Source: Octopus bimaculoides
Taxonomy: Eukaryota
Assembly (NCBI RefSeq): GCF_001194135.2
Contig: NC_068981.1
Coordinates: 1,097,146-1,161,145, forward strand
Reading direction: 5' to 3'
Length of the DNA stretch: 64,000 bases
Shown in pieces: positions 5,575 to 60,885 of this stretch (within the stretch, counting starts at the first letter, position 1; each line of letters starts with the position of its first letter). The notes under the pieces were generated by a model. That model was not told where the DNA came from and searched no databases. It worked only from the letters and a program-made list of their open reading frames with translations. The position numbers were made by a program, and so were the translations under genes.

Positions 5575-5671
5575 TTATGCAGCTGAGGAGTACATTTTCA
5601 TTGCACAACTTATGTGGTGTTCTCACTGCATAAATAAATGAAGTTTGTACGAAACGTACGTACTGCTATAA
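5575..5671 (+). ncRNA. Type I hammerhead ribozyme motif, canonical core, long stem II, palindromic stem III
   Basis: TTATGCAG-CTGAGGA-GTACA..TGTAC-GAAA-CGTACGT-A/CTGCTATAA: core CUGANGA and GAAA, G10.1-C11.1 pair, GUA cleavage triplet, stem I GCAG/CUGC plus UUAU/AUAA. Confidence 0.75.
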
Positions 5672-6598
5672 CGTAATGCATTTTTGTTGCTCTTCTTCNN
5701 NNNNNNNNNNNNNNNNNNNNNNNNNNNNNNNNNNNNNNNNNNNNNNNNNNNNNNNNNNNNNNNNNNNNNNNNNNNNNNNNNNNNNNNNNNNNNNNNNNNN
5801 NNNNNNNNNNNNNNNNNNNNNNNNNNNNNNNNNNNNNNNNNNNNNNNNNNNNNNNNNNNNNNNNNNNNNNNNNNNNNNNNNNNNNNNNNNNNNNNNNNNN
5901 NNNNNNNNNNNNNNNNNNNNNNNNNNNNNNNNNNNNNNNNNNNNNNNNNNNNNNNNNNNNNNNNNNNNNNNNNNNNNNNNNNNNNNNNNNNNNNNNNNNN
6001 NNNNNNNNNNNNNNNNNNNNNNNNNNNNNNNNNNNNNNNNNNNNNNNNNNNNNNNNNNNNNNNNNNNNNNNNNNNNNNNNNNNNNNNNNNNNNNNNNNNN
6101 NNNNNNNNNNNNNNNNNNNNNNNNNNNNNNNNNNNNNNNNNNNNNNNNNNNNNNNNNNNNNNNNNNNNNNNNNNNNNNNNNNNNNNNNNNNNNNNNNNNN
6201 NNNNNNNNNNNNNNNNNNNNNNNNNNNNNNNNNNNNNNNNNNNNNNNNNNNNNNNNNNNNNNNNNNNNNNNNNNNNNNNNNNNNNNNNNNNNNNNNNNNN
6301 NNNNNNNNNNNNNNNNNNNNNNNNNNNNNNNNNNNNNNNNNNNNNNNNNNNNNNNNNNNNNNNNNNNNNNNNNNNNNNNNNNNNNNNNNNNNNNNNNNNN
6401 NNNNNNNNNNNNNNNNNNNNNNNNNNNNNNNNNNNNNNNNNNNNNNNNNNNNNNNNNNNNNNNNNNNNNNNNNNNNNNNNNNNNNNNNNNNNNNNNNNNN
6501 NNNNNNNNNNNNNNNNNNNNNNNNNNNNNNNNNNNNNNNNNNNNNNNNNNNNNNNNNNNNNNNNNNNNNNNNNNNNNNGGACCACAGAAATCAACCGT

Positions 6599-16800: not shown

Positions 16801-19800
16801 CGGGAGGTATTGTTTTCAGTCGTGTTTGTTTGTTTGTTTGTGTGTCCATGGACAAAATATCTCAAGAATCACTGGATGGATTCAGCTGAAACTTTCAGGG
16901 ATGTTTGGCCTCACAACTGGCACAAACTGATCAGATTTTGGGATCAATCCGGTACCAGACAAGGATTCTGGATTATTTTTCCGGTTTTTTCACTTAATTC
17001 TTGAGAACGTTCGGGTTCATTTTCAGTATTCTCCTTTGTGAGAGCAGTCGAGTTTATTTCAGATATTCTCATTTTAAAAATCATCTCTGGTTAATCATTG
17101 AGAGGACGTTGGTGTTGCCTTGGCGGAGGTTTTCACTCTCTGAGTGCTCTTGTTGTTGTTATTATTATTATTATTATCATCATATAAGGCAGCAGAATTG
17201 TTAGCACGCTGGACGAAATACTTACTGGTATTTCATTTGCCGTTACCTTCTGAGTTCAAATGCTGCCAGGATTGACTTCGCCTTTCATCCTTTCAGGATA
17301 AGTTAAGTACCAGTTGCATGCTGGGGTCCGACTGGCCCCTCCCCAAAGATTTCGGGTCTTGTGCCTAGAGTAGAATAGATTATTTAAGCTTACATTCCTC
17401 TGTGGTGGTGTTTTGCATTTACAATCGTGGTACTCCGTCAGTTACGATGACAAGGGTTCCAGTTGATCCGACCAACGGAACAGCCTGCTCGTGAAATTAA
17501 TGTGCAAGTGGCTGAGCACTCCACAGACATGTGTACCCTTAACGTAGTTCTCGGGGAGATTCAGCGTGACACAGTGTGACAAGGCTGGCCCTTTGAATTA
17601 CAGGTACAACAGAAACAGGAAGAAAGGGTGAGAGTTGTGGTGAAAGAATAAAGCAGGGTTTGCCACAACCCCCTGCTGGAGCCTCGTGGAGCTTTAGGTG
17701 TTTTCGCTCAATAAACACTCACAGCGCCTGGTCTGGGAATCGAAACCGTGATCCTACAATTGCGAGTCCGCTACCCTATCCACTGGGCCATTGCACCTCT
17801 GCTTTTATAATAACATAAATATATACAAATTATAAAAATCATAAAAAAATATTTGCAAACCTCTGCTTCTTTGAATATTGCCATAATAGATGAGCTTTTG
17901 TTTTTTGATCCACTGGACGTGTAATGTCAGTGTGCACACACGACAGAGTGTAAGTGCTCTGAGAGAAATGTTGGACATAAGAAGCATCGGATATAACATG
18001 CAAGAGAGACGTTTGTGTTGGTATGGTCATGTACTACGGATGAATGAGGAGAGCTGTGTGAAGAAGTGCCACTCTGAAACAGATTTTCACCTATTGCGGG
18101 GGTTTTGGGAATGTAACACCTGCGATAGTTGAGGGATTAGTATATAATAACCCTTTATTTTGGGAAAGATTCCTCTTTACAAATAGAAGAAAGAAAATAA
18201 TCAATGATTTCAGAGAAATGTGTTGTTATCAATTGCCGATTCTAGTTTATCATGTTTGTTCTTTTCATTGTTGTCTTTAATATGAATATTTTATTTTTTT
18301 TAANNNNNNNNNNAATTGCCGATTCTAGTTTATCATGTTTGTTCTTTTCATTGTTGTATTTAATATGAATATTTTATTTTTTTTAACAGTTTCTGGAAAA
18401 TACTATTTTAATTAATTTTTTTTATCTATCTTAAAGATTATGGTGAACAAGAAAATATGGACCTTGCTACTCGGTTTAATGTTAAAAAAGAAGATTTCCC
18501 TGTTTATAAACTATTTCTGCAGGATAAGAAAGAACCGATCGCTTATACAGGAAATGTTAAAGATTCTGCAGCAATAAAAAGATTTGTTATGAAAAATACA
18601 GGTTTGTAACAAGCTTTTTTACTTTAGCCTCCATCTCTCTCTCATTCTAGTTGGGGTAGCCATGTATTCACCTCTTCAGAAAGACACCTGTTCTTGTAAG
18701 GTGTCAAGCTGGTAGAAATGTTAGCACGCCGGGAGAAATGCTTAGCGGCATTTTGTCTGTCTTTATGTTCTGAGTTCAAATTCCTCTGAGGTCGACTTTG
18801 CCTTTCATCCTTTCGGAGTCGATAAATTAAGTACCAGTTACGCACTGGGTTGATCTAATTAACTGGCCCTCTCCCCCCAAAATTTGGGCTTTGTGCCTAG
18901 AATAGAAAAGACGCCTGTTCTTGTCCCTCTATCATACTATCACATCACTCAATGCTGTACCCATCTCAGTTGAGGTTGTCTTGGTAACCTCACTAGTGCT
19001 GTTACCACAAAAAAAAAAAAGCATTGAGTACGTTGTAAAGTGATTAGTGTTAGGAACTGCATCCATCTGTAGAAACCATACCAAACCAAGCATTAGAGCT
19101 CAGCATAGCTCTCTGGCTCATCAGTTCCTTTTGAACTGTCTAACCCATGCCAGCATGGAAAAAAGGATGTTAAATGATGATAATGATTTGTTGTTGTCGT
19201 GTATCACATGCCTGCAGTGCATTGAGGGCACTGCAACAAAAGTTTTCCTGTTTAAGCAGGAGTTCTCCCACCATTGCACCACTCTTGTCCAAGTCCATCC
19301 ATTGTGTTTTTTTTTTTGCCCACCCTTTGATCTACTGCCCTCTGCTTTTCCTTCCATGATGATGCTTTGCAAACCTCTGCTTCTTTGAATATTGCCATAA
19401 TAGATGAGCTTTAAGCTAGCATGATCAGCTGGATGTGTAATGTCAGTGCGCACACACGACAGAGTGTAAGTGCCCTGAGAGAAATGCTGGACATAAGAAG
19501 CATCGGATGTGGCGTGCAAGAGAGACGTTTGCGCTGGTATGGTCATGTACAATGGATGGATGAGGAGAGTTGTGTGAAGAAGTGCCACTCCCAAACAGTG
19601 GAAGGAATCCGGGATAGAGGGAGACCCAGGAAGACCTGGGATGAGGTGGCAAAGCATGACCTTCAGACGTTGGGCCTCACAGAGGAAATGACAAAAGACC
19701 AAGACCTCTGGAGATATGCTGTGACTGAGAAGACCCGGCTAATAAAATGAGTTCACAGCTGTAACCTACACCAGAGTCGCATAACCAGCCCACTCAAAAG

Positions 19801-21444
19801 TACCTTGGATTGTAGGGCGACATGCTGTGCTTGAGGAGACCTACTGAGTCAAATACATCAAAATGAAAATCAAATGGAAATTGTAGCTGTGATTCCTGTG
19901 CCAGTGGCATGTAAAAAGCACCATCCATACGTGGTCAATGCCAGCGTCGTTTTGACTGGCTTCCGTGCTGGTGGCACGTAAAAAGCACCATACGATCGTG
20001 GTCGTTGTCAGCCTCCTGTCGCCCCTGTGCCGGTGGCACGTAAAAAGCACCCACTGCACTCTCAGAGTGGTTGGCGTTAGGAAGAGCATCCAGCTGTTGA
20101 AACACTACCAGATCAGACTGGAGCCTGGTGCAGCCTCCTGGCTTCCAAGACCCTAGTTGAGCCGTCCAACCCATGCCAGCATGGAAAACGGACGTTAAAC
20201 GATGATGATGATGATGTTCAGGAATTGTCTTTCACCTACTTGTTGTAACACCCATTCATTTGTCTGATGGTGTATATAAGAAACTCTAAACATTCTCCTA
20301 TACACCCACATTATTTCAAACTCATTGGTTATATTCTTTTCAAATTTGTTCAGAGTCCATGCTTCACAACCATAAATGCCCATTGGCTAAACGAGTACCT
20401 CACTAGCCTTGTTTTTAATTTAGTTGGAACACTTTTGCTGTTCTAGATGTTATTAAACTTTTCCATGGATGTTCTTGCCAAGGCTAGCCATGTCCTAATT
20501 TCCTTAAATGTGGCTTCATCAGAGATTTGGGCTCCAAGATAAAGGATTAGATAGACTAAATTTGGCTTATTTAAAAAAAAAGATTTTTAATTTCTTTCAC
20601 AAAATTTAAGTAGCAATAAATTTATTTTATTTAAATTCACTATCATTATCATCATTTAACATCTATTTTCCATGCTGGCTTGGGTTGGACAGTTTAGCAG
20701 GAGCTGACAAGCCAGAGAGCTGCACTGACTCCAATTGTCTGTTTTAGCCTGGTTTCTACTGCTAGATTGCCATTCCTAATGCAAACCACTTTACAGAATG
20801 TATCATCATCATTTAATGTCCGTTTTCAATGCTGGCATGGATTGGACAGTTTGGCTGAAGACTGGGGAGCTGTGCCAGGTTTTTATCTGATTTGGCAAGG
20901 TTTCTACAGCTGGATGCCCTTCCTAACGCCAACCACCCCGAGAGTGTAGTGGGTGCTTTTTACATGCCACTGGCATGCTGGGTGCTTTTTATGTGCTGCT
21001 AGCCTTTTATGTGGCACCAGCATCTGGCGGGTTGCCAAGTAGCTTGCAAGACAAAGACCTCTCAGGTGTCACTATTAATTATTGTTTTTTTTCTTCTTTT
21101 TTTAATAAATTTCAGATCTCTGGCTAGGAATGCCAGGCTGTTTAGAAGACTATGATGCTCTTGTGAAGAACTTTGCCCGTGCTTCATCTGAAGAGAGACA
21201 AGCAATTCTTGCCGAAGCTGAAGAAATTAAAAATAAGTATAGAAATGATGTGCAGAAATCCTACGCTACAATCTATGTAAAAACAATGAAAAAAATAATG
21301 GAAAAGAACGATTTCTTGGCATCAGAAATGAAACGAGTAGAGAAATTAAAAGACGGAAAAGTAAGTGACAAAAAGAAGGAGCAGCTTAGTGATAGATTAA
21401 ACATTCTTAATTCCTTCCATGTAAAATTCCAAGACGAACTATAA
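7623..21444 (+). CDS. ERP29: Endoplasmic reticulum resident protein 29 (ERp29/windbeutel family), full CDS join(7623..7742,16614..16752,18437..18601,21116..21444), 250 aa
   Basis: Four GT-AG exons join in frame (120+139+165+329=753 nt). Translation: MAHQSTPTALFILFLALLWPACLA (signal peptide) EMIKGSVPLNSGVFDK VISKHKAVLVKFDETYPYGEKQEQFKKVA..DYGEQENMDLATRFNVKKEDFPVY..WLGMPGCLEDYDAL..FHVKFQDEL*. The motifs VKFDxxYPYGEKQ, LGMPGC and a KDEL-like terminus match the ERp29 family; no CXXC. Confidence 0.96.
9574..10398. repeat. Identical 135-bp inverted duplication (9574..9708 / 10264..10398) flanking a SINE and an N gap
   Basis: Base-by-base reverse complement with no mismatch seen. Confidence 0.85.
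11587..11939 (+). mobile_element. SINE, same family as 4161..4570
   Basis: Full-length alignment to 4161..4570. Confidence 0.85.
12006..12110. repeat. Perfect 20-bp inverted repeat enclosing 65 bp (mini-MITE)
   Basis: ATAATTAAACATTGGTCATA / TATGACCAATGTTTAATTAT. Confidence 0.75.
16089..16470 (+). mobile_element. tRNA-derived SINE (family with central domain GGGCCAGCCTTGTCACAC), upstream of ERp29 exon 2
   Basis: A box TGGCCCAGTGG, B-box-like GATTTCGATTCCC, (AAC)n tail. Confidence 0.85.
16614..16752 (+). CDS. ERP29: ERp29 coding exon 2
   Basis: tttcag| VISKHKAVLVKFDETYPYGEKQEQFKKVAQSSYVQPELLIAEVQIA G|gtaagt; 139 nt. Confidence 0.95.
16783..17152 (+). mobile_element. Helentron-associated non-autonomous element (HINE/DINE-1-like)
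   Basis: 5' CCTTCGCC, (GTTT)n core, sub-terminal CCTTGGCGGAGG and 3' stem CACTCTCTGAGTG, inserted in (ATT)n; second copy at 54357..54690. Confidence 0.7.
17425..17799 (-). mobile_element. Inverted copy of the same SINE downstream of ERp29 exon 2; older copies at ~24140..24450 and ~25930..26110
   Basis: Full-length reverse complement of 16089..16470 with scattered mismatches. Confidence 0.85.
18437..18601 (+). CDS. ERP29: ERp29 coding exon 3
   Basis: ttaaag| (D)YGEQENMDLATRFNVKKEDFPVYKLFLQDKKEPIAYTGNVKDSAAIKRFVMKNT G|gtttgt; 165 nt. Confidence 0.93.
19200..20400 (-). mobile_element. Older BovB-like RTE fragment split by the 19415..20215 insertion
   Basis: 20216..20390: YGCEAWTLNKFEKN..FEIMWVYRRMFRVSYIHHQTNEWVLQQVGE; 19200..19412: LIYYGNIQRSRGLQSIIMEGKAEGSRSKG. 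Confidence 0.72.
19415..20215 (+). mobile_element. RTE-clade LINE 3' end (C-terminus, 3' UTR with tandem repeats, (GAT)n tail)
   Basis: ERRLRWYGHVQWMDEESCVKKC..GRPRKTWDEV..DLWRYAV; tail GATGATGATGAT. Confidence 0.88.
21116..21444 (+). CDS. ERP29: ERp29 coding exon 4 (helical D domain, QDEL retrieval signal, stop)
   Basis: tttcag| (D)LWLGMPGCLEDYDALVKNFARAS...LNILNSFHVKFQDEL TAA; overlaps ORF-track ORF 21130..21444. Confidence 0.96.
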
Positions 21445-21954
21445 CAGGTCCCAGCTGTTTTAATCATTATTATTTTTTTTTTTTTTCTGAAATACTATTC
21501 ATATACATGATTAATATATTTCCATATCAATAACATCATTCCTCTTTATATTTCTTTTTAGAGAAAAACAAACAAACAAAATGTGTAAAACAAAACTTTT
21601 ATTTCATGTTACACCTCTTGGAGAATGTTTTTTCTTTCTGTTTTGAAAGGTTTTTTTTTTTTTACAAGTTTGTTGTAAGCATTTAGATTAAATAGTATTA
21701 ATTTAAGACATAGTACTAAACGCATTTAAGTTTGGAACATAGCAAAGTATAAATGCCCCTAATGCTGCTGATTATTTTAATCTTATGTTTCAGAAGTTCC
21801 ATATTTTAAGTTTGTGACCATATTCCAAAGAGTAACAATTGTCATTAAATTCTTGAAAATCTTGATAATTTAACTTAGATTATACTAAAATTTAGACTTT
21901 CTGCAAACAATCTTATTTAAAATGTAATTGGCAAAAAAAAAATGGGAAAAGTAA

Positions 21955-22160
21955 CCCTTTAGTGTTCACATCACTCAGTCAAATGTATTTTGGATTAATC
22001 CTGCATTATCTCATAGTTTTGAGATTTTGATGAAGTGATCGTTTATATTTTATTTTTAGAATGACATTGTAGGTTAGGTGTGAGAGATCAGATCTGACTG
22101 GTTTGAAAAATAAACAAGTAGAATATTTGGGCCGGATATGGCTGGTTTAATGCTAAAGGG
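21955..22160. mobile_element. piggyBac-like MITE downstream of the ERp29 stop; a related fragment lies at ~14170..14350
   Basis: (G)TAA CCCTTTAG ... CTAAAGGG TTAA; internal similarity to 14170..14350. Confidence 0.7.
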
Positions 22161-22480
22161 TTAAAATTTTTCTTATTAACTTTTCAAATTCTTTTAATTC
22201 CTTACTTTTTACAATGTATATTTTTGAGTTTTGAAGTGGAAAAAAAAAAAAGGGTTTTCAAAGAATTGATCTGTTCATATACTGATTTTATTAAATACAA
22301 TTTGGACAAAATATGCATTATTTAAACTTAGGCTCACCCCACCCAAATATGTTGCATTGCTTTAAGGTTTTTAAAAAAATTTTATTTCAATGAAAATGAT
22401 AGATATTAAATCAGTGGAATGGTGATCAATTTCTTTTGCTGAAATTATAAGGCCGTAGGCTTGTTAAATTCATCAGTTTG

Positions 22481-22533
22481 GATGTTTCTGTCTGACGAGA
22501 CACAACATGTCGAAACATAAGTGTCTCAGAATC
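22481..22533 (+). ncRNA. Type I hammerhead ribozyme motif downstream of the ERp29 stop codon
   Basis: GATGTTTCTGT-CTGACGA-GACA caaca TGTC-GAAACA taag TGT-C/TCAGAATC: complete core, stems II and III, GUC triplet, stem I UUCUG/CAGAA. Confidence 0.72.
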
Positions 22534-22990
22534 TATTTTTACTAATGAACAGAAAGTGTTATGAACACAGATTCGTCACAAAAAAGGAGAAGTCTCTTGT
22601 GACGAACACAACAGCAATTGACATATTTTTTGTTTGAATGTTTCAGAGTGTATTACAAATAAACATGCAAGTCCTTATTATGTATTGAAATATAGGGAAA
22701 CTAGAGAGATAGGAACACGGAAATTTGTTGTAGTAAGGTTACTCCGCATGGAAAATATGTTTATTCACTGTAGTTGATTCATTATCGAAATTATTTGGAA
22801 AAAAGCTGCATTTTTTTTCAGTTCTCCATTTTGTTGGCTGTTTTTTTCTTTTCTTTAAAAGTATTGATCTCATTTTCAACTATCAGTAATTACAATTATA
22901 AGCAGATATTTTTGGAAGGAGGTGTATATATGTTATGTAACACAATCAGTTTATATTGCCTAAACATTCAAAACACTTTATGTTTACAAT

Positions 22991-22996
22991 AATAAA
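22991..22996 (+). promoter_or_regulatory. Candidate distal ERp29 polyadenylation signal (AATAAA); alternatives AATAAA at 22109 and 22658, ATTAAA near 21687 and 21844
   Basis: Hexamer followed by U/GU-rich sequence; usage cannot be determined from DNA alone. Confidence 0.35.
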
Positions 22997-23139
22997 CTAT
23001 TTAAAACTTTTACTTTATACTGGGCTTTGTGATTATTATTATTATTATTCTGTTGGTTAAAATGCCTGACAACAAATCATTCGGTTAGAAAACAGCCTTT
23101 AAATATTTCCCCTTCCAGTTAATAATTAACGTAGGATAA

Positions 23140-23770
23140 GGTGATGAGCTGGCAGAATTGTGATCATGCTGGAGAAAATGCTTAGCGGTATGTCTTCCAT
23201 CTTCAGGTTCTGGGTTCAAATTCCGCCAAGGTTGAGTTTACCTTTCATCCTTTTGGAGTCGATAAAATGAGAAGCTGTTGAGCACCAGGATGGATTTAAT
23301 TAACTTACTCGTTTCCCCCCAAATTGCTGGCCTTGTGCCAAAATTTGAAACTATTATTATTATTAACATGGTGAGCTGGCGGAATTGTTAGCATGCCGGA
23401 CAAAATGCTTAACAGAATGCAATCCATTCTGAGTTCAAATTTCACTGAAGTTGACTTTGCCTTTCATCCTTTCAGGGTCATTAAAACAAGTACCACTCCC
23501 CTGAAATTGCTGGCCTTGTGCCAAAATTCGAAGCCGATATCTACAATGCTACTAAAGTAACGAGCTGGCAGAACGATTAGCATGCTGGGCAAAATGCTTA
23601 GTGACATTTCGTCTGCCTCTATGTTCTGAGTTCAAATTCTGCAGAGGTTGACTTTGCCTTTTATCCTTTTGGAGTTGATAAAATAAGCTGTTGAGCACCA
23701 GGATGGATTTAATTAACTTACTCTTTCCTTCCAAAATTGCTGGCCTTGTGCCAAAATTTGAAATCATTCT
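23140..23770 (+). mobile_element. Three head-to-tail copies of a second tRNA-derived SINE family (GAGCTGGCAGAA..GAGTTCAAATTC..CTTTCATCCTTTCGGGGTCGAT); other copies at ~2763..3000, 9750..9889, 13385..13592, 17195..17380, 18703..18910, 24460..24630(-), 38320..38520(-), 43155..43338, 51990..52140(-), 54190..54330(-)
   Basis: A/B-box-like motifs and a shared body. Confidence 0.82.
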
Positions 23771-38100: not shown

Positions 38101-41100
38101 CTCTTCTCTTCCTCACATTTCCTCCTTCAAGCACTATGCCTGGCTCTCACTCCCCGATCCTGTCCTCCCAGCCCCGTTTCTCTGTATCCTTGCTATTCGG
38201 TACCCACCGATCCACCACCAACACTCTCCATATACCCAGGTTTACACCACTCACTTCCCCTCTGCACTCTCTAATCACACTTCTTTGGCGATATCCTACT
38301 ACTTATATTTATTTCTTTATTGATCACAAGGGGCTAAACAAAAAGGGGACAAACAAGGATAGACAAAGGGATTAAGTCAATTACATCGACCCTAGTGCAT
38401 AACTGGTATTTATTTAATCAACCCCGAAAGGATGAAAGGCAAAGTCGACCTCGGCGGAATTTGAACTCAGAACATAAAGACAAACGAAATACCGCTAAGC
38501 ATTTCGCCTGGCGTGCTAACATTTCTTATTTCTTTATTGCCCAGAAGGGGCTAAACATAGAGGGGACAAACAAGGACTGACAAAGGGATTAAGTCAATTA
38601 CATCAACCCCAGTGCGTAACTGGTACTTAATTTATTGACCCCGAAAGGATGCTGCCTTGGAATTCCTTCTTTGGGATAGTGAGCAGCTGCCTCATCGCAT
38701 TCTCTTGGATTTCCTCAATGTCTAGAAATTGTGTTCCTTTCAAGTGGGATTTGATCTTAGCTTTGGTTTCGAGGTTATAGCTGTAGAATAAGCACAAGGT
38801 TTAAAAAAATAATAATAAAACAAAACAATAAGTCCTGGTGTTGATTCATTTGTGTAAAGATTCTTCAAGGCTATGCCCCAGCATGGCCACGGTCTAAAGA
38901 CTGAAACAAGTAAAAGACAAAACAGTAGCTTACCAGATATTGATCCCAGAAGAATATTGCTCTTAATGTGATTGTAAACATAATCATAACTTTGGGGTTT
39001 TAATGGGGAACCTGTTGACAGAATCATTCTGAGGGCTTTCAGGTTGTGTGTTTCAGCTGCAATATAAAAAAAAAATACAAATTTCATCTTAAAACAACAC
39101 ATTTAATTATTTACAGGAATCCGATGCATTAAAAATTATAAACACATCATAAATGCACACATCTGACTGACTGTCTGTGTCTGAAGCTTTTTAAAGTGAC
39201 GAAGGGCCTTGTACAAGGCCAACCCCACTCTCTGAAATAATGTATACATTTGCCCCCAAAGAAGACCCGGTCTGCATCATCGGATGCAAAGTCACAGGGG
39301 TTACTTTCAGAGTTTTCCTTCTAGAGAAATGTTTAAATAAAGATTAGGGTCTCTCAGCAATTGTATGAGACTTGATTTTTTTTAACATAGGTAAAAAGCA
39401 CCCATGTTGGCACCATGTAAAAAGCACCTGTGTTAGTTCTACCTAAAGAGCACCAAATCCACTCTGTAAAGTGGTTGGCATTAGGAAGGGCATCCAGACA
39501 CAGAAACCATGCCAGATCAGATGATTAGCGTCTGGTGTAGTTCTCCAGCTTGCCAACTGCGGTCAAACCATTCAATCTATGCCAGTTTGGAAAATGGACA
39601 TTAAATGACGACGATGATGATGGTGATGATACAGTTCTATATTTGAGAGATGAGGAATTATGTACATTATTTACATTTGACGGATATTTGTCCTCATCTT
39701 GTTTGTTGTTAACACAAAGTTTCGGCTGATATACCCTCCAGCCTTCATCAGGTATCTTGGGGGAATTTCGAACCTGGGTTCTCATTCCTAAGGTATTTTT
39801 CGATGTTGTTATTCAGGTCACTGCCTGGAAGCAAACTTGGAATCTTGGGGTTAGTAGCCCGTGCTCTTAACCACTTCGCCATGTACTCGTGGGCACAGGA
39901 AAAACGCAAATTTTCAGCACATTTCAAACTATTTAACCCCCAACCCCTGTTCCTCTGTATTATAGGCGTAGGAGTGGCTGTGTGGTAAGCAGCTTGCTTA
40001 CCGACCACATGGTCCCGAGCTCAGTCCCACTGCGTGGCACCTCGGGCAAGTGTCTACTACTATAGCCTCGGGCCGACCAAAGCCTTGTGCGTGGATTTGG
40101 TAGACGGAAACTGAAAGAAGCCCGTCGTATATATATATGTATGTGTGTATATGTTTGTGTGTTTGTGNNNNNNNNNNNNNNNNNNNNNNNNNNNNNNNNN
40201 NNNNNNNNNNNNNNNNNNNNNNNNNNNNNNNNNNNNNNNNNNNNNNNNNNNNNNNNNNNNNNNNNNNNNNNNNNNNNNNNNNNNNNNNNNNNNNNNNNNN
40301 NNNNNNNNNNNNNNNNNNNNNNNNNNNNNNNNNNNNNNNNNNNNNNNNNNNNNNNNNNNNNNNNNNNNNNNNNNNNNNNNNNNNNNNNNNNNNNNNNNNN
40401 NNNNNNNNNNNNNNNNNNNNNNNNNNNNNNNNNNNNNNNNNNNNNNNNNNNNNNNNNNNNNNNNNNNNNNNNNNNNNNNNNNNNNNNNNNNNNNNNNNNN
40501 NNNNNNNNNNNNNNNNNNNNNNNNNNNNNNNNNNNNNNNNNNNNNNNNNNNNNNNNNNNNNNNNNNNNNNNNNNNNNNNNNNNNNNNNNNNNNNNNNNNN
40601 NNNNNNNNNNNNNNNNNNNNNNNNNNNNNNNNNNNNNNNNNNNNNNNNNNNNNNNNNNNNNNNNNNNNNNNNNNNNNNNNNNNNNNNNNNNNNNNNNNNN
40701 NNNNNNNNNNNNNNNNNNNNNNNNNNNNNNNNNNNNNNNNNNNNNNNNNNNNNNNNNNNNNNNNNNNNNNNNNNNNNNNNNNNNNNNNNNNNNNNNNNNN
40801 NNNNNNNNNNNNNNNNNNNNNNNNNNNNNNNNNNNNNNNNNNNNNNNNNNNNNNNNNNNNNNNNNNNNNNNNNNNNNNNNNNNNNNNNNNNNNNNNNNNN
40901 NNNNNNNNNNNNNNNNNNNNNNNNNNNNNNNNNNNNNNNNNNNNNNNNNNNNNNNNNNNNNNNNNNNNNNNNNNNNNNNNNNNNNNNNNNNNNNNNNNNN
41001 NNNNNNNNNNNNNNNNNNNNNNNNNNNNNNNNNNNNNNNNNNNNNNNNNNNNNNNNNNNNNNNNNNNNNNNNNNNNNNNNNNNNNNNNNNNNNNNNNNNN

Positions 41101-41137
41101 NNNNNNNNNNNNNNNNNNNNNNNNNNNNNNNNNCGAG

Positions 41138-41234
<97 letters not shown>

Positions 41235-44200
41235 TGATAGGAACAAGAAAAGAGATAAAAAGCGAGAGTAAATGAAGAGAGCCAGAAAGGAGATGTGATT
41301 GTAGCAGGAATATTTGGCAGTCCCTAAATATCTAGAAAATTGAATCTGGATCACTATATTTGATGCAAAAACAACTAAACAACAACAATGAAATTCACCA
41401 ACTACTGCTGATGTTACTAAAAAAGTGACCACTCTGGCACACTGGTAAAGAGGATCTTATCAGCAAGTTGTTTTTTTGAGGCTTGATAAATAAAACTTAC
41501 TCTTGCCATTAAACAAAAGAGCAGAGTGTGTAGGCAGTAATGGCATGCACTTGTCTGTAGAACTCAAGGCTGCCACTGATGACAAAGGCAGCAATGACAA
41601 CAAAACACCACCTGACAACAATATGTGATTATTCATTATCATTATTTCGATTGCACTTAAGTGTTCTTACCTGGTTTTAAACCTTTTTCTTCTATCAAAG
41701 AGAGCCATTTTGCACCAGTGCCAAAGATGGTGATACTGAAAAAGAAAAGTGTAGCTATTATATCTGCAAGTTAGTTTTTGTTTGTGGCAGATGTTCAGGT
41801 GCAATAAAGACTGTAAACAAACAGGAAACAACTTCTATCTCATTTCAGGGTGAAAAACTAGAGGCAGTCGATAACTTCCGCTATCTGGGCGACCAAGTTA
41901 GTAGTGGGGGTGGGTGCGCTGAAAGTGTAGCTGCTAGAATAAGAATAGCCTGGGCAAAGTTTAGAGAGCTCTTACCCCTGCTGGCGACAAAGGGACTCTC
42001 ACTCAGAGTAAAAGGCAGACTGTATGACGCATGCGTACGAACAACCATGCTACATGGCAGTGAAACATGGGCTGTAACTGCTGAGGACATACGTAAGCTC
42101 GNNNNNNNNNNNNNNNNNNNNNNNNNNNNNNNNNNNNNNNNNNNNNNNNNNNNNNNNNNNNNNNNNNNNNNNNNNNNNNNNNNNNNNNNNNNNNNNNNNN
42201 NNNNNNNNNNNNNNNNNNNNNNNNNNNNNNNNNNNNNNNNNNNNNNNNNNNNNNNNNNNNNNNNNNNNNNNNNNNNNNNNNNNNNNNNNNNNNNNNNNNN
42301 NNNNNNNNNNNNNNNNNNNNNNNNNNNNNNNNNNNNNNNNNNNNNNNNNNNNNNNNNNNNNNNNNNNNNNNNNNNNNNNNNNNNNNNNNNNNNNNNNNNN
42401 NNNNNNNNNNNNNNNNNNNNNNNNNNNNNNNNNNNNNNNNNNNNNNNNNNNNNNNNNNNNNNNNNNNNNNNNNNNNNNNNNNNNNNNNNNNNNNNNNNNN
42501 NNNNNNNNNNNNNNNNNNNNNNNNNNNNNNNNNNNNNNNNNNNNNNNNNNNNNNNNNNNNNNNNNNNNNNNNNNNNNNNNNNNNNNNNNNNNNNNNNNNN
42601 NNNNNNNNNNNNNNNNNNNNNNNNNNNNNNNGGCACATAAAAGACACCATTTCGAGCGTGGCCGTTTTCATGCGGGTGACACGTAAAAGCACCCACTACA
42701 CTCTCTGAGTGGTTGGCGTTAGGAAGGGCATCCAGCTGTAGAAACTCTGCCAAATCAGACTGGAGCCTGGTGTTGCCATCCAGTTTCACCAGTCCTCAGT
42801 CAAATCGTCCAACCCATGCTAGCATGGAAAGCGGACGTTAAACGATGATGATGATGATGATGATATTAACTAGGAAAAACTAAAAACATTTAAATGTTTT
42901 TCATTGGAGCAGTTTATTCAAACTGGTCAAATTTTCTTTGGTAACAATAAAACCAACATCTATTGTACAATAGAGTTGTTCTATTACATAGCCAGGTCAC
43001 AGTTTCAACCAACAGTCAAAAGCTATCATCAGGAATTCCCTCTATAAACTGGTCGGCATTAGGAAGGGCTTCAATCCATAGAAACCTTGCCAAAACAGAC
43101 AATTGGACCCTGGTGCAGCTCTCTGGTTTGCCAGATCCTATCAAACCACAGCATGCCGGGAAAAAATGCTTAGCGGTATTTCGTCTGTCTTTACATTCTG
43201 AGTTCAAATTCTGCTGAGGTCAATTTTGCCTTTCATCCTTTCGGGGTCGATAAATTAAGTACCAGTTGTGTACTGGGTGCCAATCTAATCGAGTGGTCCC
43301 CTCCTCCAAAATTTCGGGCCTTGTACCTAAAGTAGAAAATAATTAAATAAGGTGATAGATGTGATTAATTTCTGAAACTTACCCGATATTATCAATTAAA
43401 TCCCACAATACATTTGGGTGTGGCATCAGCGGAGAACCATCATAGAGAACAATTGCAGAACCTAATGCCAGAGTAGAAACCAACCAATTCCACATCATCC
43501 AACCAGCCTAAAGAACAAGGAAGAAAGATAAGGAAATGATCAAGAAGAAATCTACAGATATAAATTGAACATCACACAAGTGTTCATCTGTCAGGGTGAC
43601 AAGGAGCATCAGTCATCATGACAGATGACTGATGACTTATGCAATGACTGTTTAAAGTGAAGAAAAGTTGCAGTCTTCTTTCTCATCAACTGTCAATCTT
43701 ACTCTCTTATCTGTGACCATCTTCGATCCAGTTGCAAGACCAGGTCAAGATGACTGAAGACAGAGATAGCCACAGTGGATGACCAGGATGTCTTACTTTT
43801 GCCACATCTCGCTCTCTGCATTCTACAATGCATGGCTGCAAACACCTTCCTATTCTTTAAACCATGAAGGCTTCTCGTGCACAGTTCACTGGATCCAGTC
43901 TTCACATGCATAGGTAGGGAAGCCCTAATATGCTAATTAACCAATAGCTGGGACCCAGAAGAAATATTACTAATCCAAATCAGAGTAGACCTGGGATCAA
44001 TAATGGTCAAGAAGTGGTTCTACATTCTGCAAAATCTTGGAATTCTTGTACCAGGGGCCCCACTACTGGTTGCAGTTTAAAGTCATTCACACCAAGGATA
44101 TATCTTGAATATAAACAATAAACAATAAACAGGCACAAAGAAATCAGGCATTAATAAACTGAGAGGAGGTGAATCTACTTGCTGTTGTATAGTAGAACAT

Positions 44201-50154: not shown

Positions 50155-53100
50155 CAATTATGTACTAATTTTTTCTGAGAACTTGTAGATAATATGAAGT
50201 AGATAACAGGCCTGATTTTATACGCCACCCCAAAACATACTTCCATACTCATTCGGTAATCTTTCTGCTCTGTGTCTGTTCTCTTATCTTTCTTATGCAC
50301 TTCTAACTTCTTATGTCTCATCTGATACCTCACTCCATGTGTGAGAGTGAGTGACCAAGCATATGTGTGTGTTTATTTATTTATAAACAAAAATAAACAT
50401 TTATCGGATGACATGTTAACCCAACAGTTAAAGATTCAAATATATCTACGCAAGTCCATTAGTTTTGCCTAATATAAAGGGGCAGTAATCCATGCCAGCA
50501 TTAGTTCATCCTGTAGATGAAACTGAGAAAGTCTAGAAATTATTGTGGAAGGATTCGGGGACTTCATTGTTCTAAACAAACATATAGGAATTCATAGAAA
50601 AATATGAAAAAAAAATCTTTCAAAATTGATAAAATAGATAAAAATAGAACATAATTGAGTTTTTAATAGAATATATCTGAAAGATAATCTGTACAAACAG
50701 ATATACATTTACACACACGTATATAAAGTTTAATAATTGTTATTCTTGGAACTGTTCTCTTGAATCACTCGTAGTATGACACCTAAATACAAGGTGTGGC
50801 AGAAAGGTTGCCCTCCCCACTGCCAATTTCAAAGGTTAATAAAACACAAACACATGAAGATACAAGAAAGAACGACACTCTCCACTCCGGGCCCTGGTGG
50901 GTATTACCCGAGACAGAAACAAAAATGGCATTTAATGAACTTCATAGAAGTACAAAGTTTTTCCATGCATCTTCATGTGTTTGTTTTTTATTAACCTTTG
51001 AAATCAGGGCAACCTTTCTTATACTCTCTTTTACTTGGCCATGCTGGAGCAACGTCTTTAGTCGAGCAAACCGACCTCAGGACTTATTTTTTGTAAGCCT
51101 AGTACTTATTCTATCGGTCTTTTTTGCCAAACTGTTAAGTTACGGGGACGTAAACACACCAGCATCAGTTGTCAAGTGATGCTTGGGAGGGGGGGGGGTC
51201 GGCCTGAGGCTATAGTAGAAGACACTTTCCCAAGGTGCCATGCAGTGGGACTGAACCTGGAACCATGTGGTTGGTAAGCAAGCTAATTACCACACAGCCA
51301 CTCTTAGCTCTCTGAATAAGAATGAATAAGATAAATATTATATATATATTGCCAGTGTATAAAAGAATATACCCAATGTGTGTGCATGCATGCATGTTTT
51401 AGAAAGCCACTACAAATTAGAAATTATGAAGTGAAAACAATGGAATAAGACCAAAGATTTACTGAGTGTTGAGGCAGATTTTCTATGGCTGGATGCTGCT
51501 CCTGTCACTAACCTTCATCTGTTTTCAAGTAAGGTAATATTTCCACATAGCTAAATTTGTTTTCACAGAATGTGGACAGCTGTGTGAAAAAGTGTCACAC
51601 CTTAGCAGTGGAGGGAACCTGTGGAAGAGGTAGACTCAGGAAGACCTGGGATGAGGTGGTGAAGCACGAACTTCAAACGATGAGGAGTGACTGAGACCTT
51701 TGGAGATATATTGTGCTTGAGAAAACCTGGCAAGCCAAGTGAAACTGTAACCTTGGCGTATGCCAGTGCTGCATAACTGGCCCATTTAAGAGTACCCTTC
51801 AATCATTGGGCAATAAACTGTGCTTGAGAAGAGCTATTGAGTCAAGTGAAGTCGTTGTCATGGCCGATGCCAGCGCTGCATAACTGGTGTTGTGCCAGTA
51901 GGACATAAAAAGCACCATTCGAGCGTGGTCATTGCCAGTGCTACCTGACTGGCTCTGGTGCTGGTGGCACATAAAAAGCATTATTAGATTGACTCCAGTG
52001 TGCAACTGGTACTTAATTTATCGACCCTGAAAGGATGAAAGGCAATGTTGACCTCGGCAGAATTTGAACTCAGAATGTAAAAACAGATGAAATACCGTTA
52101 AGCATTTCGCCCAGCATGCTAATGTTTCTGCCAGTTTGCCACCTTTTTTGCTGCATAATATTGCCTGTGGGCATATAGCATAGTGTACCCCTTCATTCAA
52201 ATAAATGGTTGGGTTTAAAATTCCACCAGGACACCTGATGAAGGCTGGAGAGTACATCAGTTGAAATATTATGATAACAACAAACAAGACGAGGAGACCT
52301 ATCCATCCATTGTAAATCATCTTTATTTCTAAAATACAGAACAGATGATGATGATGCAACAGGTACACAGCCACACCTATGTAACCCCCTACACACAGAT
52401 GTACAAACACATACACACCTACATATAGGTACATACATATATACACACATACACACACATATATATTTGCTAGTTTATTTTGTCTCTTTGTCTTCTCTCC
52501 TGGTGCTGTATGAACATTTAATGTGGTTTTGGAGTTAAGGTTTTGACTGCTATTTCAAGCATGGTGGTATCTCTTAGATACCCTAAATTATAATTTTTAT
52601 AATAATTATTACCTTTTGAGGTTTTTTATTCCCATGCTGGCCACCTGATAAGATCGATGTTCTAAATAACGATCCTATCCTTATTTATATAAATGTATAT
52701 AAATATATTAATAATAATAATATGACAACAGAAGAATGAATGAGACCTCGATATTATGTAAAATAGAGGAATTTATCTATAAATATGATATGTGACAATT
52801 AGTTGGTTGTCATAATAAAACTCAGAGTTTCGGATGCTAGGGGTGAAGTCTGCTCCGGCATCTCATCAGTTATTAAGACAGATGCTTTGAAAAAAAAAAA
52901 AAACATTGAATAAAGGGAAATTACTCCAATAGGCATGGGGAAAGTAATACTTCATTCATAGAATCCGCATATGCACACATACACACACACACACACACGT
53001 ACATGTGTGTGTGTGAGTATGTATATAGATATATATATACATAGATATATATGCTGGAGTAGACTTCAGCCCTGGCATCCGAAACTCTGAGTTTTATTAT

Positions 53101-56100
53101 GACAACCAAGTAATTGTCATATATTATATTTATATATCATCATCATCATTTAACGTCCGCTTTCCATGCTGGCATGGGTTGGACGGTTTGACTGGGGACT
53201 GGCAAGCCAGATGGCTGCACCATATATATATATATATATATATATATACCCAGGAGACACAAAGAAGTGCAATTGTGTCTGACTCGCTACTTCACCAGTA
53301 ACAATACAAGAAAGAAAAGCAATAACATAGAAAGGTGGTGCTCCAGCATGGCCTCAGGCTCTGGCTGAAAATAGAAGAAGAATAAACAAACATCCTCATA
53401 CAGACACAAACATGGAAAAAGTCACGTATATACACGTTTGACACCGAAACAGTTAAATAGTGTTTATTAATCAATAAAAATAGTGAAATACTTATCAGAG
53501 AAAAAGACTGAAAATAACGAAACAGGGAAGTTTGATAAAAGTTATCGAAGGCGACTCACTGATATCGACAGTTATTGGAAGTTATATATATCATATCTCT
53601 AAAACTGGAATGATACCGAGATGATTAGCATGGCCTGGTGCAAGGAGGACACGCACATTTCTGAAGCATTCTATACTTCATCACATAAAAAGAATGCTTG
53701 ATGGCACCATGTCAAAAGCAGTGACAATAGTGCCATGTCTAAAGCATGGGTGATGGTGCCATGTCGAAAACACAAGTGACGGTGCCATGTCTAAAGCATG
53801 GGTGATGGTATCATGTAAAAAGCATGGATGGTGGTGCCATTTCTAAAGCATGGGTGATGGTGCCATGTCTAAAGCATGGATGATGGCACCATCACCCATG
53901 CTTTTTACATGGCACCATGTGAAAAGCACCCAGTACACTCTGTAAAGTGATTGGCATTAGGAAGGGCATAGAAACCATGCCAAGGGTGGCTCCTGGCCAT
54001 GCCAGCTCCTGTCAAACCATCCAACCCATGTGAGCATGGACGACAGACATCAAATGATGATGATGATTAGCATAAACACAGATGAAACGTCACTTAGCAT
54101 TTTGCCCAGCTAACAATTTTTCTAGCTCATCATCTTAAAAATATTGGTTTCAAATTTTGGCACAAGTTTAGTGGGAAGGAATAAGTCAATTATAGTGACC
54201 CCAGTTTTTTCAACTGGTACTTATTTTATTGACCCCAAAAGGATGAAAGGTAAAGTCAACCACGGCGAAATTTGAACTCAGAACATAAAGATGGATGAAA
54301 TATTGCTAAGAATTTTGTCCAGCTTGCCACCTTAATTATAATAATAATAATAATAATAACAAGAGCACTCACAGAGCACAATCCTCCGCCAAGGCAACAC
54401 CAATGTCCTCTCAACGATTAGCCGGAGATGATTTTAAAATGAGAATATCTGAAATAAACTCGACTGCTCTCACAAATTAAGTAAAAAAAAAAAAAACAGG
54501 AAAAATAATCCAGAATCTTTGTCCGGTACCGGATTGATCTCAAAATCTAACCAGTTCGTGCCAGTCACAAGGCCAAACATCCTTGAAAGTTTCAACCAAA
54601 TCTATCCAGTGGTTCTTGAGATATCTTGTCCATGAACAAACAAACATGACTGAAAACAATACATCTGCCTTTGATTAAGGCAGAGGTAATTAATAACATT
54701 CAGAAAATTAAAATAAAGAAAATATTCCTACCTTGAATAACTTTCCTGACCTTGTTCAAATGGTCATGGACCTTATTATTGTAAAACACAGCATTCACGG
54801 TAAACATAAGCTTTGGTTCAATTTGTGAGAATCTTTCAAGAACACCCTGTAGAAAAAAGAGAATAAGGGGAAAAGTTTTGAATGAAATTCTTCAGTGGCA
54901 CCGTTTTACTTCCCTCCCTCTTTTACTTGTTTCAGTCATTTGACTGTGGCCATGCTGGAGCACCGCCTTTAGTCGAGCAAATTGATCCCAGGACGTATTC
55001 TTTGGAAGCCTAGTACTTATTCTATTGGTCTCTTTTGCTGAACCGCTAAGTTACGGGGACGTAAACACACCAGCATCGGTTGTCAAACGATGTTGGGGGG
55101 ACAAACACAGACACACAAACAAGCAAGCTACTTACCACACAGCCACTCCTACGCCTGTTGAATTAGAACAAATTAAACATACATATTAATGATGTCTTTA
55201 GCCACTGGATCCTATCAAGGAGCTGCTGGGGTAGCGAACCACGAAATGTGGTTGGAATTCCTCAGATATTGACTGCAGGGAAGGACTTGCTGACAATCCA
55301 GAAAGCGGGATGACAAAGCGGAGAGATACTTGACAGTACGACAGAGTAATGAAGGATCAAATGGGCTTGCAGCCCGATCCAGGGTAAAGCTGCAACAAGT
55401 AAGCATGATGAACCATGACCCCATGATCCCAGAGCACGAGGGGAGAATAAAGGATCAAACAGGAACAGAAAATGGAATGGATCCGGACAGGAAATGGACA
55501 AATAGAAAGGAAGCGGTAAAGGAAAGGTAGATGAGGAATTCAGCTGCTGTGGAAAGGTGTTTTCTAGTGTTTTTGCAGTGGAATATTGCTAAGGTGTGGT
55601 CAGAAGTTTGCTTCCCAACCACATGGTTCTGGGTTCAGTCCCACTGCATGCCATCTACTATAGCCTTAGGCTGAACAAAAGCCTTGTGAGTGGATTTGAT
55701 AGACGGAAACTGAAAGAAGCCTGCCGTGTGTTTGACCCCCACCATCACTTGACGAGGTATTGGTGTGTTTACATCCCTATGACTTAGCAACTTGGTTAAA
55801 GAAACTGATAAAAATAAGTACCAGATTTAAAAAGAAATAATAAGTACTAGCTCAGTTGCTATGGCATTGAGGTAGATCCAGCCACCCCAGTTAACGAGGA
55901 CAAAACTCGGATTTAAACCACTGGATGATGATGAAGCAGTGACATGCACACATGTCCAATAGGAAAGCCAATAATGGCTCCTCTAACATAAGGAGAAGTG
56001 ATATGTATGAAAAATGGAAACAGCTGAAGGATTTCTTGCCTCAGTTCCAAAATCAGGTGATGTAGAACTCCAAATTGCACCAATACTGGCTGCAGCAAGC

Positions 56101-59045: not shown

Positions 59046-59073
59046 GTGCAGTGGCAGGCCGGATGAACTGACC

Positions 59074-59202
59074 TCAGGAAAGTTACCACAGGGATAACTG
59101 GCTTGTGGTGGCCAAGGATTTGCAGTGACGTCGCTTTTTGATCCTTCAATGTCGGCTCTTCCTATCATTGTGAAGCAGAATTTGCAAAGCGTTGGATTAT
59201 TC
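59074..59202 (+). pseudogene. Dispersed 28S rRNA fragment (~130 nt, degenerate)
   Basis: AAAGTTACCACAGGGATAACTGGCTTGTGG..GACGTCGCTTTTTGATCCTTC.ATGTCGGCTCTTCCTATCATTGTGAAGCAGAATT..AAGCGTTGGATT is the conserved LSU 3'-domain sequence; flanks are not rDNA. Confidence 0.92.
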
Positions 59203-60885
59203 TTCTCTTTGGTGACCCCGGGGTTAGACGGTTTGACTGGAACTGGTAAGCTGGAGGGCTGAACCAGGTTCCAGTCTGATCTGCGTTGGTTTCTATGGCT
59301 GAATAATGCCCTTCCTAACACCAACCACTCCAAGAGTGTAATGGGTGCTTTTTACATGTCACCGGCACAGGTACCAGTTATGTGACACCAGTATTGATCA
59401 CAACTGCGATTTCACTTGGCTTGATGAGTTTTCTCAAGCATGGTATATAGTCAAAGGCCTCGGTCACTTGTCATTGCCTCTGTAAGGCAATGACAAGTAA
59501 CAGAAGTTATTAACTACAGCTAGGAAGTTCTCTGAGCATTGAAAAAATCTATATCACCAGTGTTCTGACAGCTAGATTACTTTCTTGTACAGCTGCCACA
59601 TGCAGAGTGAGAGAGAATGTGTGTGTGTGTGTGTGTGTGTGAGGATGTAAATCAATGTCGTTCTTACTTTATGTAAAAAAAAAACTTAGCCATTTGGTAA
59701 ACAGAGATCATTTAAGCAAGTAGCATCAGGAGGTGATATGATTGACCAATAAATTCTAGAGGTGGTGCCCCAGTATGGCCACAGACCAATGATTGAAACC
59801 AGTGTGAAGGAGAGTTCTATATTTTGGTCAAGGATTCAACAGAATATACATTGATGAGGTGGAACACCCAGAAAATTGGTTCATTTATCTTATCAGTTGA
59901 GCCAGCTGTCAATATTTAAAATAATGATTTCTAAACGAGACACAAGGTCAGACATTTTGTAGGAAGGAAGGTTGTCAATTCATGATTTGTATTCAACATG
60001 CCAAAGCAGTTGATCTGACGCTTGACCAATCTGAACAAATTTGTTTATTCATTTAACTTCCATTTCTTCATGATAGCATGGGTTAGAGGGGGACTTATCT
60101 GAGGCAGCATTGTTAAGGTTTGATGCTCTTCTTTCAAAAACCTGAAGAATAAAAAAAGCAACATTTACCTGCCGACCCTTATTTTGTTTTATCTGGCAGG
60201 TTATTCTTTTACTTGTTCCAGTCATTTGACTGTGGCCATGCTGGAGCACTGCCTTTTGGTCAAAGAAACCAACCCCTGGACTCATTCTTTGTAAGCCTAG
60301 TACTTATTCTATCAGTCTCTTTTGCTGAACTGCTAAGTTACGGGGACGTAAACACACCAACATCAGTTGTCAAGCGATGGTGGGGGTGGGGGGAAAACAG
60401 ACACAAACACACACACCTGTAGTACCTTCTGTCGTACGGTGCTTGTTTACATGTCTGGTTGGTTTATTTATAATGTCATAAGGGGCCTTGGGCCACTTAT
60501 GATAGGGGCCTTACATATTACTGACATTCCTTGTCAGTCTCATTACTCCCTTCTTCCAGGCCCGTTGGGAAGCTTTGGGGGGTTTAGTTCCAGTGCATGG
60601 CATCTTAGGTAAGGATTGTAAGGGTTTTCTACTATAGTCTCAGGCTGACCACTGCCTTGTGAGTGGACTTGGTAGATGGAAACTGAAAGAAGCCCATAAT
60701 ATATAAGGAATAAATCAGATACATAGAAGAGAGTAAACTGTTTCTGAAAAAATATTCTTGCTTTTCTGAAGAACAATGAAGTTGTGAATGAAAGAATTTG
60801 GTAGATGATTCCCTCTAGGAACCAAAATTAGGTCAAGGACTTAAACCAACTGGAATTCTCTTCTTACACACACACACACACACAT

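Follow-up and report, generated by a model that had tools for sequence, protein, structure and literature searches.

A solitary type I hammerhead motif downstream of ERp29 in Octopus bimaculoides, probably a decaying relic of a retroelement-borne ribozyme

The window analysed here is a stretch of 64,000 nt of Octopus bimaculoides DNA (contig NC_068981.1), read on the forward strand. It contains the last coding exon of ERp29, which is 96% identical to that of O. sinensis XP_029645346.1 and encodes a C-terminal peptide sharing 96-97% identity with the O. vulgaris and O. sinensis proteins. A hammerhead motif lies downstream of the ERp29 stop codon in sense orientation, at a measured distance of 1,042 nt that agrees with the figure of about 1,040 nt given in a first-pass annotation of this DNA. 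The convergent gene beyond the motif, which that annotation had called AACS, encodes ACAS_N and AMP-binding domains and is indeed AACS-like. Two AATAAA hexamers were said to follow the motif, and both are present (22658 and 22991), but five more AATAAA/ATTAAA hexamers lie between the ERp29 stop and the motif, at 21687, 21844, 22109, 22290 and 22405. The main features flanking the motif are listed below.

21112-21444, + strand: last coding exon of ERp29, open reading frame ending in ...HVKFQDEL, stop codon at 21442-21444, PF07749
22589-22613, + strand: putative degenerate copy of the 5' half of the hammerhead, GAAGUCUCU-UGUGACGA-ACACAACA, with G in place of C3, 108 nt downstream of the motif
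22658-22663, + strand: AATAAA, putative poly(A) signal, conserved in O. sinensis, 133 nt 3' of the predicted cut

A full type I hammerhead motif, with all core nucleotides and three helices, occupies positions 22479-22535 of the + strand. Written as RNA it reads UGGA-UGU-UUCUGU-CUGACGA-GACA-CAACA-UGUC-GAA-ACA-UAAG-UGU-C-UCAGAA-UCUA, and its parts, assigned by sequence, folding and alignment to Rfam, are the following.

22479-22482, + strand: 5' strand of the distal extension of helix I, UGGA, pairing with 22532-22535
22483-22485, + strand: loop 1, a 3-nt 5' bulge UGU, laid out as in natural type I hammerheads
22486-22491, + strand: 5' strand of helix I, UUCUGU, positions 2.6-2.1, forming five pairs with 22527-22531
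22492-22498, + strand: core C3-A9, CUGACGA (sequence and Rfam alignment), the same in O. sinensis
22499-22511, + strand: helix II GACA/UGUC (22499-22502/22508-22511, 4 bp, closed by G10.1-C11.1) with loop 2 CAACA
22512-22514, + strand: core G12 A13 A14 (sequence and Rfam alignment)
22515-22524, + strand: helix III ACA/UGU (22515-22517/22522-22524; A15.1-U16.1, C15.2-G16.2 and A-U) with loop UAAG
22525, + strand: C17 of the GUC triplet, aligned to the cleavage site of RF00163, predicted cut C22525/U22526
22526-22531, + strand: 3' strand of helix I, UCAGAA, positions 1.1-1.6 (sequence and Rfam alignment)
22532-22535, + strand: 3' strand of the distal extension of helix I, UCUA (folding)

Helix I thus counts 5 bp (UUCUG/CAGAA, 22486-22490/22527-22531), helix II 4 bp and helix III 3 bp. 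Every conserved core residue is in place (C3 U4 G5 A6 N7 G8 A9, G12 A13 A14, A15.1-U16.1 and H17), and the core-flanking pairs G10.1-C11.1 and A15.1-U16.1 are formed, whereas U22491 and U22526 are mismatched at 2.1/1.1, a U·U that is C·U in O. sinensis. The elements recognised in the first pass (core, helices I-III, loops, GUC triplet and UGU bulge) were each found at the positions it gave. The further 4 bp that it described beyond the bulge also exist, as U22479-A22535, G22480·U22534, G22481-C22533 and A22482-U22532, but this stem reaches 2 nt past 22481-22533 on each side and includes one G·U pair. Cleavage after C22525 is predicted from the GUC triplet and from the alignment to the model. 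The UGU bulge, the distal stem and the CAACA loop together form a layout that appears suited to a tertiary contact between helices I and II. The contact had initially been drawn as Watson-Crick pairing of UGU with ACA, an idea that we do not retain, as the loops of type I hammerheads are reported to interact through non-canonical pairs (PMC6155905). The likeness of the UGY bulge and CAACA loop to those of natural relatives is the better argument.

Such relatives were sought by scanning metagenome contigs for CTGANGAG-NNN-CAACA-NNN-CGAAAC, which yielded 43 matches at 40 loci (L016-L055). Of the 43 matches, 26 show full complementarity at the three unconstrained positions of helix II, compared with about 5% expected by chance. 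Distinct families among them have in common several traits that the search pattern did not specify, namely a helix I of 6 bp, a 5' bulge of 3 nt, a distal stem of 3-5 bp, a U following helix I and Watson-Crick pairing of 1.1 with 2.1. Of 13 natural type I hammerheads, 11 have UGC as the bulge, in the position and with the length of the octopus UGU, and the CAAUA loop of the O. sinensis variant also occurs naturally (L047). The environmental hammerheads resemble the octopus motif in helix II length, CAACA loop 2, 6-position helix I and 3-nt bulge, and differ from it in their GC-rich helices and in the 1.1-2.1 pair, which is formed in every natural relative examined.

The peripheral layout of the octopus motif (6-position helix I, UGY bulge, distal stem and U) agrees with that of at least 12 natural type I hammerheads. 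It also fits the published description of the canonical metazoan type I, whose helices I and II measure 6 and 4 bp and whose short helix III ends in a small loop (PMC4209133), and of invertebrate forms in which helix III consists of two base pairs and a tetraloop (PMC7229834). Because of this agreement with both the natural class and its published description, we place the octopus motif in the hammerhead lineage and do not regard it as a coincidence; core, topology and peripheral architecture all uphold its initial identification as a type I hammerhead. Among the environmental loci, tandem hammerheads occur in L017, where the copies are separated by 626 nt, and in L030, where they are separated by 1030 nt, whereas those of L029 form an inverted pair. 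L039, L045 and L047 each have an ORF of 674 aa close to the hammerhead, and that of L039 is an RVT_1 protein. We dropped a possible link to Penelope-like reverse transcriptases through L039, whose ORF is LINE-like and is separated from the downstream hammerhead by a (GT)n microsatellite.

Could the motif serve the gene next to it? A long 3' UTR isoform of ERp29 might contain a domesticated, gated ribozyme that self-cleaves upstream of the AATAAA at 22658; cleavage would then remove the poly(A) tail, or would aid 3'-end formation or termination, and a competing hairpin would provide the off state. The motif is sense to ERp29 and precedes a conserved AATAAA by 133 nt, and precedents are found in the Clec2 3' UTR and in the intronic hammerheads of amniotes (PMC6155905), all of which favour this reading. 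We nevertheless consider it unlikely, given the five poly(A) hexamers upstream of the motif and the comparative and energetic evidence described below.

The O. sinensis locus (L003) aligns to window positions 22406-23094 at 90% identity, hammerhead motif included, and its motif has an identical core. Four differences separate the two species within 22479-22535. First, G22481 is A in O. sinensis, with the loss of one pair of the distal stem. Second, U22491 at position 2.1 has C as its O. sinensis counterpart, both being mismatched with U1.1. Third, A22502 (10.4) is replaced by G, turning an A-U pair into G·U. Finally, C22506 of loop 2 is U (CAACA to CAAUA). Three of these changes are structure-compatible with the hammerhead (rough chance about 0.05) and keep its pairing, and the core is intact in both species, as would be expected of a domesticated ribozyme. 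However, the motif is 93.5% identical between the two species, compared with 90.1% for its flanks in the rest of the block, a difference that we do not read as excess conservation. The 1.1/2.1 mismatch drifts without being restored, and in O. sinensis the distal stem is disrupted. All 13 core positions are unchanged, an outcome expected about one time in three at the observed divergence. Between the two Octopus species compared we detected no signal of purifying selection on the motif, and this one close ortholog displays no double compensatory change. The alignment of orthologous 3' flanks, which the first-pass annotation had proposed as a check, therefore confirms the presence of the motif in O. 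sinensis, but neither excess conservation nor a compensatory pair. The unchanged core and the compatible substitutions would leave room for weak constraint.

The position of the motif relative to ERp29 also differs, at about 645 nt past the stop in O. sinensis versus 1,042 nt in the window, because the intervening DNA is unrelated: window positions 21803-22405 (605 nt) have no counterpart in the 212 nt at 28540-28752 of the O. sinensis locus. Judging from the alignment, this segment, which includes two A-runs, looks like a lineage-specific insertion or replacement. The difference in distance, with unrelated DNA in between, argues against the domesticated ribozyme. So does the absence of any CUGANGA...CGAAA motif 3' of ERp29 in L001, L002 and L004-L015, distant loci at 53-60% protein identity whose flanks cannot be aligned with the window. 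Further downstream, window positions 22766-22965 are 95-100% identical to O. sinensis, compared with 79-92% at the hammerhead and its surroundings; this block could be part of the 3' UTR of ERp29 or of the convergent AACS.

Folding also bears on the question of activity. The hairpin that had been noticed in the first pass as a possible competitor is real, and it is the minimum-energy fold in both the window and O. sinensis.

22497-22527, + strand: competing hairpin GAGACAC/GUGUCUC plus AUGU-CGAA-ACAU, obtained by folding

It sequesters G8, A9, helix II, G12-A14, helix III and C17, with an energy of -10.1 to -11.6 kcal/mol, compared with -3.4 to -4.7 kcal/mol for the hammerhead fold; the minimum-energy fold as a whole reaches -13.6 kcal/mol. 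When constrained to the hammerhead, the fold lies above the minimum by 8.7 kcal/mol in the window and by 9.4 kcal/mol in O. sinensis, and the hammerhead represents about 1e-7 of the ensemble. By the same measure, 11 natural relatives whose helix III is stable show a gap of 0.0, and dimer-type relatives with a palindromic ACGU loop show one of 1.8-3.3 kcal/mol; in the environmental hammerheads, unlike the octopus motif, the hammerhead fold is at or near minimum energy. The isolated helix III hairpin of the octopus motif has an energy of +1.7 kcal/mol, and in simulated transcript growth core residues are sequestered at all lengths. By nearest-neighbour energies, which omit the loop-loop tertiary contacts that stabilise natural hammerheads, the active fold is thus not thermodynamically accessible, and a gap of about 9 kcal/mol argues for poor activity, tertiary contacts notwithstanding. 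Both O. sinensis substitutions inside the competing hairpin fit it as well as they fit the hammerhead. The stability of the region is itself ordinary (z = -1.0), with 35 of 200 shuffled sequences folding as well.

The competing fold could be a regulatory off state instead of a sign of decay. For the domesticated ribozyme, an active fold disfavoured by about 9 kcal/mol is a point against. Neutral-looking conservation, the drifting mismatch, the broken distal stem and the unfavourable fold weaken the earlier suggestion that the motif destabilises ERp29 mRNA or serves as a terminator, which we find unsupported. There is only a slim chance that ERp29 has a long 3' UTR isoform in which a retrozyme-derived, hairpin-gated hammerhead tunes mRNA stability or 3'-end choice.

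A chance resemblance, in which an AT-rich imperfect hairpin happens to carry the core strings without hammerhead ancestry, appears very unlikely. The first-pass annotation had recommended an Infernal search with the Rfam hammerhead models. In a narrow scan of 221 nt the motif does match RF00163 (Hammerhead_1) at 29.3 bits (E=1.4e-5), but this score, like the 27.1 bits of the O. sinensis motif, falls below the gathering score of 34 bits; in the same scan RF02275 gave no match to the motif. Whole-window Rfam scans, by gathering threshold or by E-value, did not report the hammerhead, as the match was removed by the speed filters. A score under the threshold that is lost to default filters is what a chance hairpin might produce, and the unremarkable stability of the region (z = -1.0) points the same way, as does the fact that a loose pattern also picks up SINE copies in the window and, at 52819-52869(-), a sequence that is not a hammerhead.

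The threshold was calibrated on natural hammerheads of matching architecture and perfect structure at nine loci, of which two reach 34 bits (L025, 40.4; L041, 37.6). Three others score below it (L030, 31.2; L016, 28.8; L053, 27.1), L032 matched HH9 only (24.9 bits), and L017, L044 and L037 were unlisted. The gathering threshold is therefore conservative for the class of hammerheads with a CAACA loop, and since bona fide relatives score 27.1-40.4 bits, in the same range as the octopus motif, its shortfall is weak counter-evidence. A class-specific covariance model was dropped, as MAFFT misaligned the variable helix III and the training set had been chosen by the candidate's own loop.

Chance expectation was estimated with a first-order Markov model trained on octopus DNA. 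A relaxed descriptor is expected to give about 3.5 matches per genome, which would suit a coincidence, but the canonical form (G10.1-C11.1, C15.2-G16.2 and C17) is expected only about 0.004 times per genome, and the rescaled Infernal E-value for the one family corresponds to about 0.04 chance matches per 2.7-Gb genome. Furthermore, the UGY bulge, the distal stem, the helix lengths and the CAACA/CAAUA loop match natural hammerheads independently of the core.

It is highly improbable that the functional element is instead the alternative stem-loop at 22497-22527, or a hairpin at 22480-22535, acting as a putative protein-binding or processing signal with an incidental hammerhead: this stem-loop is the minimum-energy fold in both species, and in O. 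sinensis C22506U gains a base pair and A22502G retains a G·U, but it is no stabler than shuffled sequence (35/200 fold as well), it is conserved no better than its flanks, and it would leave the intact 13-nt core and the loop 1/loop 2 match unexplained.

The surroundings were also inspected for signs of a mobile element. No other copy of the motif sequence was found in the window, as had been claimed at the outset, nor in 38 kb of O. sinensis, and these roughly 100 kb of octopus DNA contain no parent element, tandem copy or second full hammerhead. Positions 21445-23200 hold neither a tandem unit nor a second intact hammerhead. The helix III loop UAAG is non-palindromic, so the dimer cleavage mode would be unavailable, and together with the lack of a second copy this closes the dimer route. 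No Penelope-like coding sequence or pseudo-LTR was seen in the window, and no long intact RT-like reading frame was recognised among its ORFs of at least 110 aa. The RT fragments present are LINE-type and distant from the motif (17890-18132, 19421-19750 and 41810-42100). The locus thus shows neither setting of a retrozyme or Penelope-like element, that is, a tandem unit or a pseudo-LTR beside RT/GIY-YIG.

The putative half-copy at 22589-22613 matches 22481-22507 in 22 of 27 columns, a score reached by 1 of 500 shuffles, and it is also present in O. sinensis; it hints at an old duplication, which we treat as a weak lead. A 13/15 match at +154 nt, considered as a tandem remnant, was not significant. 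A 9-bp hairpin, TTCGTCACA/TGTGACGAA, is located at 22573-22607, 50 nt 3' of the hammerhead. Its stem is kept in O. sinensis with a loop shorter by 7 nt, and its 3' arm overlaps the putative half-copy.

Hardly credible, finally, is the view that a retrozyme or Penelope-like element comprising the motif is still active and that its transcripts yield circular or linear unit-length RNAs: the resemblance of the motif to natural hammerheads and the putative degenerate half-copy 108 nt downstream would accord with this view, but there is one intact ribozyme only and no tandem unit, the two species each have this locus as a single orthologous copy, and the non-palindromic helix III loop offers no dimeric cleavage.

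In our assessment the motif is probably a solitary, decaying hammerhead relic of the retrozyme/Penelope class. It is a true hammerhead of type I and belongs to the canonical metazoan class, as borne by non-LTR retrozymes and Penelope-like elements; a single copy would have entered the ERp29-AACS intergenic region or 3' flank before the divergence of the window species and O. sinensis. If transcribed and actively folded, it would self-cleave between C22525 and U22526 through standard hammerhead transesterification, which generates 2',3'-cyclic phosphate and 5'-OH ends. With a mismatch beside the scissile bond, helices rich in A and U, a helix III of 3 bp and strong competing hairpins, the motif is now weakened, which argues for a relic of low or no activity on which no selection is detectable, and not for a domesticated regulator; we regard this as the most likely state. 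The drift of position 2.1 (U/C), mismatched all the same in both species, and the breakage of the distal stem in O. sinensis are consistent with decay. Since no parent element was found, the argument for a mobile-element origin is that of class resemblance. Dispersed monomers of retrozymes are common in Xenopus, where those overlapping exons favour 3' UTRs (bioRxiv 10.64898/2026.07.22.740005), so a solitary copy in a 3' flank would be an expected pattern.

The closest known systems are the hammerheads of non-LTR retrozymes and satellite/SINE-like repeats, such as Schistosoma Sm-alpha, newt satellite 2 and those of coral, mussel and axolotl (RF00163, clan CL00010). Like the octopus motif, they are type I and combine the same core with a 6-position helix I, a 4-bp helix II, a short helix III with a tetraloop, a GUC triplet and an internal bulge of the extended helix I facing loop 2 (PMC4209133, PMC7229834). 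They are tandem or multi-copy, and their cleavage is often dimeric, by way of a palindromic loop in helix III, whereas the octopus motif is solitary, has a UAAG loop and is set apart by its 1.1/2.1 mismatch and weak AU-rich helices. The minimal hammerheads of Penelope-like pseudo-LTRs are also type I, and are themselves retroelement-borne and widespread in invertebrates. In contrast with the octopus motif, their helix II is longer, at 7-8 bp, while helix I is shorter and helix III nearly absent. Retrozymes have been proposed to be non-autonomous derivatives of Penelope-like elements (PMC4209133; bioRxiv 10.64898/2026.07.22.740005), and Naiad elements are reported in cephalopods without canonical hammerheads (PMC8557442).

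Among host-associated hammerheads, that of Clec2 is similarly sense, located 3' of a stop codon, and would cut before the poly(A) signal (PMC6155905). It is a type III ribozyme with a helix I insertion of 150-1500 nt, found in several mammals and conserved across them, whereas the octopus motif is a compact type I in a putative 3' UTR without excess conservation. The amniote HH9/HH10 ribozymes (RECK, CTCL, DTNB) share the type I topology and are thought to have been domesticated from retroelement hammerheads (PMC6155905). They are intronic and ultraconserved across vertebrate classes, unlike the octopus motif, which is present in two close species and evolves at a neutral-looking rate. On present evidence, the octopus motif is well formed, but nothing out of the ordinary for the known class to which it belongs.

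Hammerheads abound in animal genomes, where retroelements carry most of them. Those thought to have been co-opted by their hosts amount, to our knowledge, to a handful, Clec2 and the amniote intronic HH9/HH10, all of them in vertebrates. Our literature search turned up no hammerhead ribozyme described from a cephalopod genome. Taken as a relic, the motif would indicate that a canonical retrozyme-type hammerhead reached the octopus lineage, and would provide a dated, single-copy orthologous locus for studying the decay of such motifs. If it proved active within the ERp29 mRNA, it would offer a simple model, in an invertebrate, of how a ribozyme controls the 3' ends of an mRNA, and a gated ribozyme in the ERp29 3' UTR would be the first such case outside vertebrates.

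Several other features of the window were recorded. The loose hammerhead pattern gave false matches at 35800-35840(-) and 39711-39751(-), which are copies of a tRNA-derived SINE and lack helices I and III; both carry CUGAUGA...CAGCCGAAA just past the GGTTCGAAAT box. The match at 52819-52869(-) was rejected as a hammerhead for an extra C between helix II and G12, the lack of an Rfam match and a very poor constrained fold. It coincides with one arm of a 62-nt inverted repeat, about 90% identical, at 52800-52861 and 53039-53100 around a TA/CA microsatellite. Numerous tRNA-SINE families are represented by 5-13 copies each in the 64 kb, and many N runs (e.g., 5640-6590, 36090-36720 and 40170-41130) correspond to gaps typical of a draft Octopus assembly. 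A fragment of 28S rRNA (212 nt, 100.8 bits) at 59059-59270 (+) covers model positions 2412-2988 with a large internal gap and overlaps an opposite-strand 183-aa ORF; it is probably a transposed or pseudogene fragment. Finally, a U6 snRNA gene or pseudogene at 53571-53680 (+) matches its model over the full length at 56.5 bits, compared with a gathering score of 44.
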